Shown here in pieces: positions 1,484-4,670 of a stretch of DNA of 64,000 nucleotides. The notes beneath the pieces were generated by a model that made no database searches, was not told the origin of the DNA, and worked only from the letters and a program-made list of their open reading frames with translations. The first letter of the stretch is position 1. The number at the start of each line of letters is the position of its first letter. Both the position numbers and the translations under genes were made by a program. This DNA comes from Parasitella parasitica NRRL 2501 (lineage: Eukaryota; Fungi; Mucoromycota), in contig MU619331.1 of NCBI GenBank assembly GCA_025201805.1, forward strand, positions 6,458 to 70,457, read 5' to 3'.

Positions 1484-2749
1484 TCATTACATTTGCATCA
1501 ACTATACGATTTACGCAATCACCTAATAAAACTTCATGTCATGTATTACAGTTATGCGTTCCATACAGGGCATTGTGACAGATGATACATACCATAAAAA
1601 CTGCCAATGGCCCAAACGTGCGTTATGAATGCTCTCTATAGAACAAGTTATAGTCGTATATATTGTTGAATTATTCGCTAGCAAACCCAACTCCTAGAGG
1701 ATTTTATATACATACAACATGTTTGATGAGGTTTTTGTCTTGACATTGCTGAAATAAGCACCCAACCTAGTGCTTCGCAAATCAAGCAAATGTTCATAGA
1801 TGTTTAAAAACAAATTTTTTTTTATTGATTGAAGAACAAATAAATGTGCTAGCTTTTTCAGTTCTCAACTTTGCTTTACAGGTTAGTTGATTAACAGGAT
1901 CCACCACGTGAAGGTAAAAGCTCATTACATCCCAAAAAAGTGGGCAAAAGAAAGTCAAACAAAGACAATCTTTACAACTGACAAATCTTAAATAATATTG
2001 CTAAAGAACCTTAAGAGAGGGAGGGTCAATCACGGATTGGCAAGTATTCCAACACGGCGAAAGTCTATGCATCTTACAAGCCAGTAACAACATTACCTCA
2101 GCACAACGACGAGCCTCAAATCAAGGGTCTCCGAAGAGGGAGATTCTATCGGGTTCGGTCAATACCAACACTAGCAATAGGCTATGCATCAGGCCAGCAC
2201 AACGACAAAGAAATTAAAAAAAAATAGTAGGCTAATGTCCACATCTAGAACAGTCTATACATCTGACGCTTCATAGCATTGTATTAAAAGGTCTCTGGAG
2301 AGGGAGTATTTGTCGGGGTCAACAAATATGCTAACGCTAGCAACATGCTATACATCCGGCCAACACAACAATACAAAACATAGAAACAACAGAGAGAGGG
2401 ATCTGGGGGATGTGGCATTCCACTAAGAAAAGAAAAGAAAAGTAAAAAAAAAAATTTTTAAAAGAAAAGATGAGAAAAGATGAAGAAAAAACGCGTTACC
2501 AAGTTTGTTGCAGTTTTTATTTTAGAGGAGAGGTGTGCCCGAAGAGGTACAGGCTCTCGAAGCCACGCTTTATTTTCAGTAATATACAGTACTATATACA
2601 GTAAGTTATGACTCAATCGAACAGCATCAGTTGGAATGGCAAAAAGGTACTTTATGACAATGAATAGTAAATAGTAGTGTTAGAGAACAAAAAAATACCT
2701 TATGAAGGGTAATTTTTATTGAATAGAAATATAGAAACGACAAAAGGCT

Positions 2750-2838
2750 AACTTCCGTGCGCTACCATTAAGTAGAATATCACGTTCGAAGGGTATAATC
2801 TCAGCAAGGATATTCAAAGGACCCAAGCACCCCTAGTT
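2750..2838 (-). ncRNA. TPP riboswitch aptamer in the THI4 3' UTR
   Basis: Minus strand reads AACUAGGGGUGCUUG..GCUGAGAUUAUACCCUUCGAACGUGAUAUUCUACUUAAUGGUAGCGCACGGAAGUU. P1 AACU/AGUU, P2 GGGUG/UACCC, J3/2 CUGAGA, P4 CGUG/CACG, P5 CUACU/GGUAG with UAAU loop and GCG. It lies about 105 nt after the stop of a thiamine biosynthesis gene. Confidence 0.93.
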
Positions 2839-2943
2839 TTTCGCCGATCATTATGAATCAGAAAAGAAGGATTAAATAACAACCAACATCAAACCTATAA
2901 AAAATTAATAACCCATGGAAATTGCCTTATCTGCTTGTCAGAT

Positions 2944-4031
<1,088 letters not shown>

Positions 4032-4670
4032 TCAAATTTCTTGAGCTCTATTTATAACAAAATTTTACTTTACTTGAAAAATCATATGCAAGTCGTACAA
4101 CGGATCTTATCCGCTCACAATGATTCACATCTTACGTTTACGTCTATAAAGTTTGTAGACTCAATGCTGCCAATATTTTTTGGGCTGATGCCGTATACTC
4201 TATCGTGCCGAACGAGAAAGAAAGATAACCAAAGTAATGATAGCTGTTATTTTCATCACGGCCAAGATTTTATCTGTGAAACTTTTGTCATAGCAGGTAA
4301 AGCTTGGAGATCTTAATACTCATGTGGCAAATATATCATTTCAGCATGATAATTTATTGCAAAACTGTTATAATGGTATATACTACAGCGATATAGCCAG
4401 CACCAATAGTCCCAATACAGCGCCCGTGATCTTAATGAGATGTTTCTTTTCATTGATACAAGTTGTCTTGTATTTCTATATTCGCTATTTTTTTCGGAAC
4501 GGAGTTCAGTGCGAGATCCGAGGAATCCATCTAATAAAATGACAAAATGTGGGAGCCGTGGCTGTGAGAAAAGTATAAATATATCCGACAATAATGCTAT
4601 TATATAAGATGCGTGTAACGTCGCCATTTTTAATCCTACTTCTTCTCCACATTTACACAAGAATAAACTG

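Follow-up and report, generated by a model that had tools for sequence, protein, structure and literature searches.

A TPP aptamer and two conserved competing helices in the 3' untranslated region of Mucorales THI4 point to a two-state riboswitch

The window analyzed in this study, a stretch of 64,000 nucleotides from Parasitella parasitica NRRL 2501, carries on its minus strand the gene for the thiamine thiazole synthase THI4, which is present as a single copy in the P. parasitica genome. Coding exon 1 (positions 3192 to 3989, 266 codons) was delimited by its open reading frame, by protein matches and by a splice joint in RNA contigs; a protein search with the product of this exon alone as the query returned 100% identity to the P. 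parasitica thiazole synthase and approximately 96% identity to Mucor THI4, together with the Pfam family PF01946. Intron 1 (3131 to 3191, 61 nt, GUAAGC..UAG) was placed by its sequence and by a joint at 3129/3191 (cut +1) in an RNA contig, and exon 2 (3092 to 3130, 39 nt, 13 codons) by sequence and RNA contigs. Intron 2 (3040 to 3091, 52 nt, GUAUAA..UAG) is present in both spliced and retained contig paths: the contig with the joint had a depth of 563 and the contig that passes through 3011 to 3120, retaining the intron, a depth of 1026, such contig depths being rough. Exon 3 (2944 to 3039) closes with a UAA stop codon at 2946 to 2944 and encodes a C terminus that is conserved in all orthologs. 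If intron 2 is retained, the frame reads GUA UAA, an immediate stop, and yields a product of 280 amino acids; because the deposited Parasitella protein model has exactly this length, the public THI4 model looks like the intron-2-retained isoform. THI4 proteins of the Mucorales are approximately 75% identical to plant THI1, and many of their records are named "chloroplastic."

On the same strand, a TPP aptamer (RF00059) with helices P1 to P5 occupies positions 2737 to 2844, starting 100 nt past the THI4 stop codon; it was recognized by an Rfam match, by its fold and by its invariant core. The segment from 2844 to 2737 matched model positions 1 to 105 of 105 with 50.8 bits (E value of 8.9e-9), which is 3.5 bits below the RF00059 gathering score of 54.3 bits, and a default Rfam scan missed it because its score lies under this cut-off. 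When the spacer that precedes the aptamer was barred from pairing, the window sequence folded as a canonical aptamer with an extended P1, P2, P3, P4 and P5, and blocking the spacer gave a recognizable aptamer fold in most of 11 loci. THI4 was also retrieved from 11 other assemblies, a small set, confined to the Mucorales, that covered a second Parasitella, three Mucor species and one Mucor paralog, Benjaminiella, two Rhizopus, Backusella, Mycotypha, Rhizomucor and Absidia. In 10 of 11 other Mucorales loci RF00059 matched the THI4 strand, with scores of 43 to 56 bits and at a distance of 80 to 200 nt past the true stop codon; the Backusella aptamer scored above the Rfam cut-off. The ligand-contact motifs GGGGUGC, CUGAGA, ACCC and GCGCACGGAAG form invariant columns in a 10-sequence Mucorales alignment, and the THI4 RNA is predicted to bind TPP. 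In Rhizomucor pusillus, no TPP aptamer was found within 3 kb either side of THI4 and no match to the model of the competing helices described below; in this lineage the element has been either lost or placed elsewhere. Two scans of metagenome contigs with the conserved aptamer-core patterns gave no matches.

RNA evidence came from a single public run, available to us as contigs and of unknown thiamine status, which is taken to be RNA because its contigs splice both THI4 coding introns. One contig spans 2681 to 3040 without a gap and contains 96 nt of exon 3, the stop codon, an intron proposed in a preliminary description of this locus and the entire aptamer; therefore, exon 3, the spacer and the aptamer share one RNA. 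The only joints in the RNA contigs were those of the two THI4 coding introns. An AAUAAA poly(A) signal lies at 2715 to 2720 on the minus strand, and an equivalent AAUAAA was found 10 to 70 nt past the aptamer in all 11 loci. The contig ends at 2681, 34 nt past the signal, which marks a probable cleavage region, and no contig of this run was found for 2470 to 2680. Contigs do not prove an RNA end and drop rare forms; an abundant second path through the untranslated region (UTR) would probably have been kept, since the assembler retained both paths at intron 2.

A 2024 catalogue (PMC11683625) includes TPP aptamers near THI4 in the Mucoromycota, in tables without any 3'-UTR entry. Its supplement assigns the Mucorales THI4 aptamers to "5' UTR, Type I," with one from R. 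microsporus given as "INTRON," and enters the one from M. lusitanicus as "ATP binding protein, 5' UTR." Taken at face value, these labels would assign the aptamer to a different gene farther downstream, as part of its 5' UTR or of an intron. We consider this extremely improbable, since the aptamer and THI4 exon 3 are on one RNA contig, the next genes lie on the opposite strand in the window and in two of the comparison loci (L006 and L007), and AAUAAA follows the aptamer. The arrangement typical of fungal Type I elements, an aptamer in a 5'-UTR intron with alternative donors and uORFs, was not found in the window, where the aptamer lies past the stop codon on the coding strand, and the label "5' UTR, Type I" does not fit these Mucorales loci. 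Furthermore, the catalogued M. lusitanicus aptamer is identical to positions 4163 to 4264 of L007, 114 nt past the THI4 stop codon, and the gene named for it is probably a mis-assignment. The catalogue record is thus corrected to a 3'-UTR position rather than a 5'-UTR or intron position, with one wrong gene. A downstream exon or gene that might own the aptamer was also considered and rejected: conservation was confined to the first 60 nt past the aptamer (two Parasitella assemblies) and to the neighboring acetyltransferase genes.

Between the stop codon and the aptamer lie the 5' strands of two helices, alpha and beta, that compete with it. The alpha 5' strand, or anti-aptamer (2906 to 2940, minus strand), starts 3 nt past the stop codon and was identified by RNAduplex, minimum-energy folds and covariation. 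Its partner, the alpha 3' strand (2738 to 2767), takes in L5 and the 3' strand of P5, the 3' strand of P4, GGAAG, the 3' strand of P1 and a UUUUGUCG extension, and reaches 9 nt beyond the 3' strands of P5, P4 and P1. An anti-aptamer just past the stop codon had been proposed in the preliminary description, as a pairing of 2928 to 2906 with 2767 to 2744 that has 21 pairs, 2 mismatches and 1 bulge; its letters and coordinates are correct, and both RNAduplex and the minimum-energy fold recover this pairing with the 3' strands of P5, P4 and P1 as the core of the longer alpha helix. In an RNAduplex comparison of the spacer with the 3' half of the aptamer, alpha (2940 to 2906 with 2767 to 2738) had an energy of -27.8 kcal/mol, against -14.9 +/- 3.0 kcal/mol (z -4.3), and none of 300 dinucleotide shuffles was as low; the z-scores of the individual loci ranged from -0.9 to -4.8. 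Alpha also forms when the entire window 3' UTR is folded to minimum energy, and it was present in the minimum-energy folds of all 11 loci, the window included, with 13 to 36 pairs, beginning 3 to 19 nt past the stop codon in 10 of the 11.

The beta 5' strand (2876 to 2895, GGUUUGAUGUUGGUUGUUAU) pairs in minimum-energy folds with the P1 5' strand and its upstream flank (2835 to 2854), which together form the beta 3' strand, and beta had at least 6 pairs in 9 of 11 loci. The core of its 5' strand, GUUGGUUG, is conserved and is covered by helices 5 and 6 of the covariation analysis. Because alpha takes the 3' strand of P1 and beta the 5' strand, each strand of P1 has its own upstream competitor. 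The universal core of alpha is the capture of GGAAG and the P1 3' strand; alpha additionally unzips P4 and P5 within the Mucor clade. Two conserved motifs in the spacer are fully explained as complements of both P1 strands.

The anti-aptamer helices are conserved and covary across the Mucorales, and they exclude P1. Conservation of the pairing in other Mucorales had been suggested as a check on the preliminary description; alpha was found in 10 other THI4 loci, with compensatory changes such as a P5 3' base that is U opposite an A in alpha and C opposite a G in alpha. When partners were swapped between species, the cognate alpha strands bound with a mean of -23.95, compared with -20.92 for swapped strands (permutation p of 0.0009), and the cognate beta strands also bound better (p of 0.037). 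A covariance model was built from five close sequences and then used to align all eleven; in the model-fitted alignment, 83.2% of cells paired, as opposed to 34 to 55% with slid partners. Changes on both sides were counted at 17 pairs in the model-fitted alignment of 11 sequences, compared with 8.4 in shuffles, a value that none of 500 shuffles reached; however, the sequences share ancestry and their alignment was guided by the structure, so that the shuffle tests are inflated. The covariation count was not significant when only the 5 close relatives were used.

In every locus, the ligand-free fold was more stable than the fold in which the aptamer was enforced, by 6 to 16 kcal/mol and, in 9 of 11 loci, by 11 to 16 kcal/mol. 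A cost of 6 to 16 kcal/mol is of the order that a tight nanomolar ligand and tertiary contacts could pay; because the calculated gap is so large, switching may require co-transcriptional kinetics. The gap also bears on the idea that the aptamer is a conserved but nonregulatory relic, with alpha and beta merely a stable UTR structure. Diatom 3'-UTR TPP aptamers offer a precedent, in that they are reported not to regulate their genes (PMC9544697). In the Mucorales, however, the core that contacts the ligand does not vary between families, the competitor strands covary with precisely those strands that P1 needs, and the energy gap is similar in most loci, all of which makes a relic very unlikely.

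The preliminary description went further than the anti-aptamer and proposed that alpha masks a splice donor at 2912 and that TPP promotes splicing to an AG at 2833, so that an 80-nt intron is removed, a distal poly(A) site is used and the mRNA becomes less stable, as with plant THIC. The letters are as described (GG/GUUAUU with the G at 2912, and CUAG/GGG with the AG ending at 2833, slashes marking the proposed cuts), the alpha pairing is real and it does cover the donor GU. In addition, 80 nt is of the order of the 43- to 77-nt second THI4 introns in these loci, CUAG/G resembles the true acceptors of these THI4 genes, and nucleotides of P4-P5 hide a 5' splice site in plant THIC as well as in fungal NMT1 (PMC3597705). 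Retention of the stretch in an apparently high-expression RNA sample is also what would be predicted for the ON state. The splice signals themselves tell against this model. In the minimum-energy folds, the alpha 5' strand lacks a GU in 5 of 11 loci (Benjaminiella, both Rhizopus, Mycotypha and the M. circinelloides paralog; a longer RNAduplex version of alpha in Benjaminiella does include one), and the proposed donor is GUUAUU, whereas 21 of 21 THI4 coding-intron donors begin with GUA, a trinucleotide that occurs nowhere in the window spacer. The acceptor CUAG/GGG belongs to the aptamer consensus, and its AG, at the base of P2, is missing from two loci, Absidia (CUUGGGG) and the M. circinelloides paralog (CUGGGGG); in R. 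microsporus, the sole GUs lie no more than 32 nt from this AG.

The consequences ascribed to the proposed splice are not supported either. Because AAUAAA lies past the aptamer in every locus, downstream of the acceptor, removal of the 80-nt intron would leave in place the processing signal whose loss is central to the plant mechanism (PMC3597705, PMC12371167), which argues against plant-like poly(A) switching. The proposed junction would stand 32 nt past the stop codon, which is short of the usual distance between stop codon and junction for junction-dependent decay. RNA data had been named as a check for the 2912/2833 junction, and none was present in the contigs of the one RNA run: positions 3040 to 2681 were unspliced, and the contig for 2681 to 3040 was without joint or branch, even though the intron 2 bubble was kept in the same assembly. 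Since these are the contigs of a single run, a rare or thiamine-induced 2912/2833 splice may occur. Of the plant-like platform, then, the conserved anti-aptamer helix against the aptamer stands, but conserved splice signals and a plant-like intron do not; with regard to THIC-type features, the window has a 3'-UTR aptamer, but a masked functional 5' splice site and a signal-bearing intron were not found in it. We regard the 80-nt intron model as quite unlikely, and as less likely than a switch that controls the fate of the mRNA in unspliced form.

Splicing could instead be the output through other, lineage-specific sites that are exposed by TPP, such as weak donors in the spacer, or the U-rich ...UAUAG/G before beta acting as an acceptor. 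Every experimentally validated eukaryotic TPP riboswitch to date acts via splicing (PMC3597705), and in most loci a Y-rich tract and then an AG stand before beta, with UAUAG/GUAUGG in Absidia. Against such sites, the window spacer is without a canonical GUA donor, the candidate sites vary by clade, pairing with the P1 strands accounts for most of the conserved letters, and the contigs contain no joint. The released spacer also showed no significant complementarity to the last THI4 coding intron (z -1.5 to +1.4). Splicing at lineage-specific sites is therefore judged unlikely, and a splicing output of any kind, the 80-nt intron included, remains doubtful.

With moderate confidence, we favor a two-state TPP riboswitch that fills the THI4 3' UTR with mutually exclusive folds and whose output is probably the fate of the unspliced mRNA, namely its stability, termination-coupled decay or 3'-end processing. 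In the absence of ligand, the alpha 5' strand (2940 to 2906) would pair with the 3' half of the aptamer (2767 to 2738) and the beta 5' strand (2895 to 2876) with the P1 5' strand (2854 to 2835); with alpha and beta occupying these strands, the ligand pocket cannot form. The stop codon and AAUAAA would then lie at opposite ends of one helix and the UTR would be one compact domain, since the base of alpha ties the stop region to the sequence just before AAUAAA. When TPP is bound, P1 to P5 would form and the U-rich spacer of approximately 90 nt would be freed as a single strand. Both the switching and its direction, in which high TPP would lower THI4, are predicted.

As to the output, the prospects of mRNA-fate control as a class are about even, and such probability as it and splicing do not take up falls to an absence of regulation or to something unforeseen. 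What favors a nonsplicing output is chiefly that no conserved splice signals are present, together with the contigs of one run whose thiamine status is unknown. It can be imagined, more tentatively, that this is a eukaryotic riboswitch free of splicing, in which TPP would select between two forms of the THI4 mRNA, mature or nascent: one where a helix clamps the stop codon beside the poly(A) signal, so that the UTR is compact and the mRNA stable, and one with the approximately 90-nt U-rich spacer released; this version is possible but on balance doubtful. In the second form, the UTR would be extended and exposed to termination-coupled decay, to decay factors or to a change in 3'-end processing. 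Because the helix starts 3 to 19 nt past the stop codon in 10 of 11 loci, terminating ribosomes would be expected to open its base in each round.

In the literature available to us, we found no description of such an alpha/beta platform or of a fungal 3'-UTR mechanism, and in a 2018 survey the 3'-UTR cases were only those for the eIF5B gene in Postia. The Mucorales element resembles plant THIC and non-seed plant THI1 in carrying its aptamer within the 3' UTR of a gene for thiamine synthesis, THI1 being the plant THI4 ortholog, with a TPP aptamer in its 3' UTR in non-seed plants (PMC11521341). The shared aptamer position and the likeness of THI4 to THI1 raise the question of common ancestry versus convergence. 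In plant THIC, as here, a ligand-free upstream strand pairs with P4-P5 nucleotides of the aptamer (PMC3597705); however, plants mask a 5' splice site and the intron that is removed holds the processing signal (PMC3597705, PMC12371167), whereas Mucorales THI4 has no conserved donor or acceptor, its poly(A) signal lies past the aptamer, and the core of the competitor pairs both P1 strands by means of two separate upstream strands.

The Neurospora crassa switches of NMT1 and THI4 (5'-UTR intron) and of NCU01977 (long-distance alpha-alpha') are likewise fungal, and in them too an upstream element pairs with the aptamer only without TPP (PMC3597705). Unlike the Mucorales element, which has its aptamer past the stop codon in an unspliced UTR, they have aptamers in introns, either ahead of the coding region or inside it, and select among 5' splice sites. 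In bacterial TPP riboswitches, the ligand similarly stabilizes P1 and a competitor otherwise captures a P1 strand. In bacteria, the competitor usually follows the aptamer and controls a terminator or ribosome-binding site, but both Mucorales competitors are upstream and their target is a eukaryotic 3' UTR. To our knowledge, no conserved competitor helices have been described for the 3'-UTR aptamers of diatoms and prasinophytes. These aptamers share the 3'-UTR position and have no known mechanism (PMC4260697, PMC9544697); those of diatoms differ in being reported not to regulate.

All eukaryotic riboswitches whose mechanism is proven are known to work by alternative splicing. The presence of a deeply conserved fungal 3'-UTR TPP riboswitch with a two-helix P1 competitor and no conserved splice sites, as we propose, would make action on an unspliced mRNA testable, and Mucor lusitanicus is a tractable fungus that carries the same element. 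The Mucorales include agents of mucormycosis, against which TPP riboswitches have been suggested as drug targets; the position of the element and the way in which it would switch matter for that proposal.

The P. parasitica genome has two other good TPP aptamers, at 1501 to 1624 (minus strand) of locus L002 and 1501 to 1600 (plus strand) of locus L003 (contigs C48 and C161 of assembly G000). Each follows a sugar-transporter coding region on its own strand, the next gene at L003 being convergent, and in both there are well-formed intron signals (GUA..UACUAAC..YAG) between the apparent stop codon and the aptamer. The sugar-transporter class consists of 5'-UTR elements in the published catalogue (PMC11683625). 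A coarse duplex test for an upstream anti-aptamer was not significant at either of these two aptamers (z -1.0 and +0.1).

Just past the 3' end of THI4, the window also contains a separate transcribed block (1982 to 2415, contig depth of 422) made up of about three tandem modules of approximately 100 nt each. An Rfam scan of 1850 to 2700 gave no match, and conservation of the block at the same place was absent in the other Parasitella assembly and in Mucor. Finally, a small hairpin (ACCCUU..AAGGU) was seen by eye between AAUAAA and the contig end (2721 to 2690, minus strand), and an equivalent hairpin (ACCUC..GAGGU) at approximately 4290 to 4320 of the M. lusitanicus locus, where the pairing, again by eye, seems to be kept despite the change in sequence.
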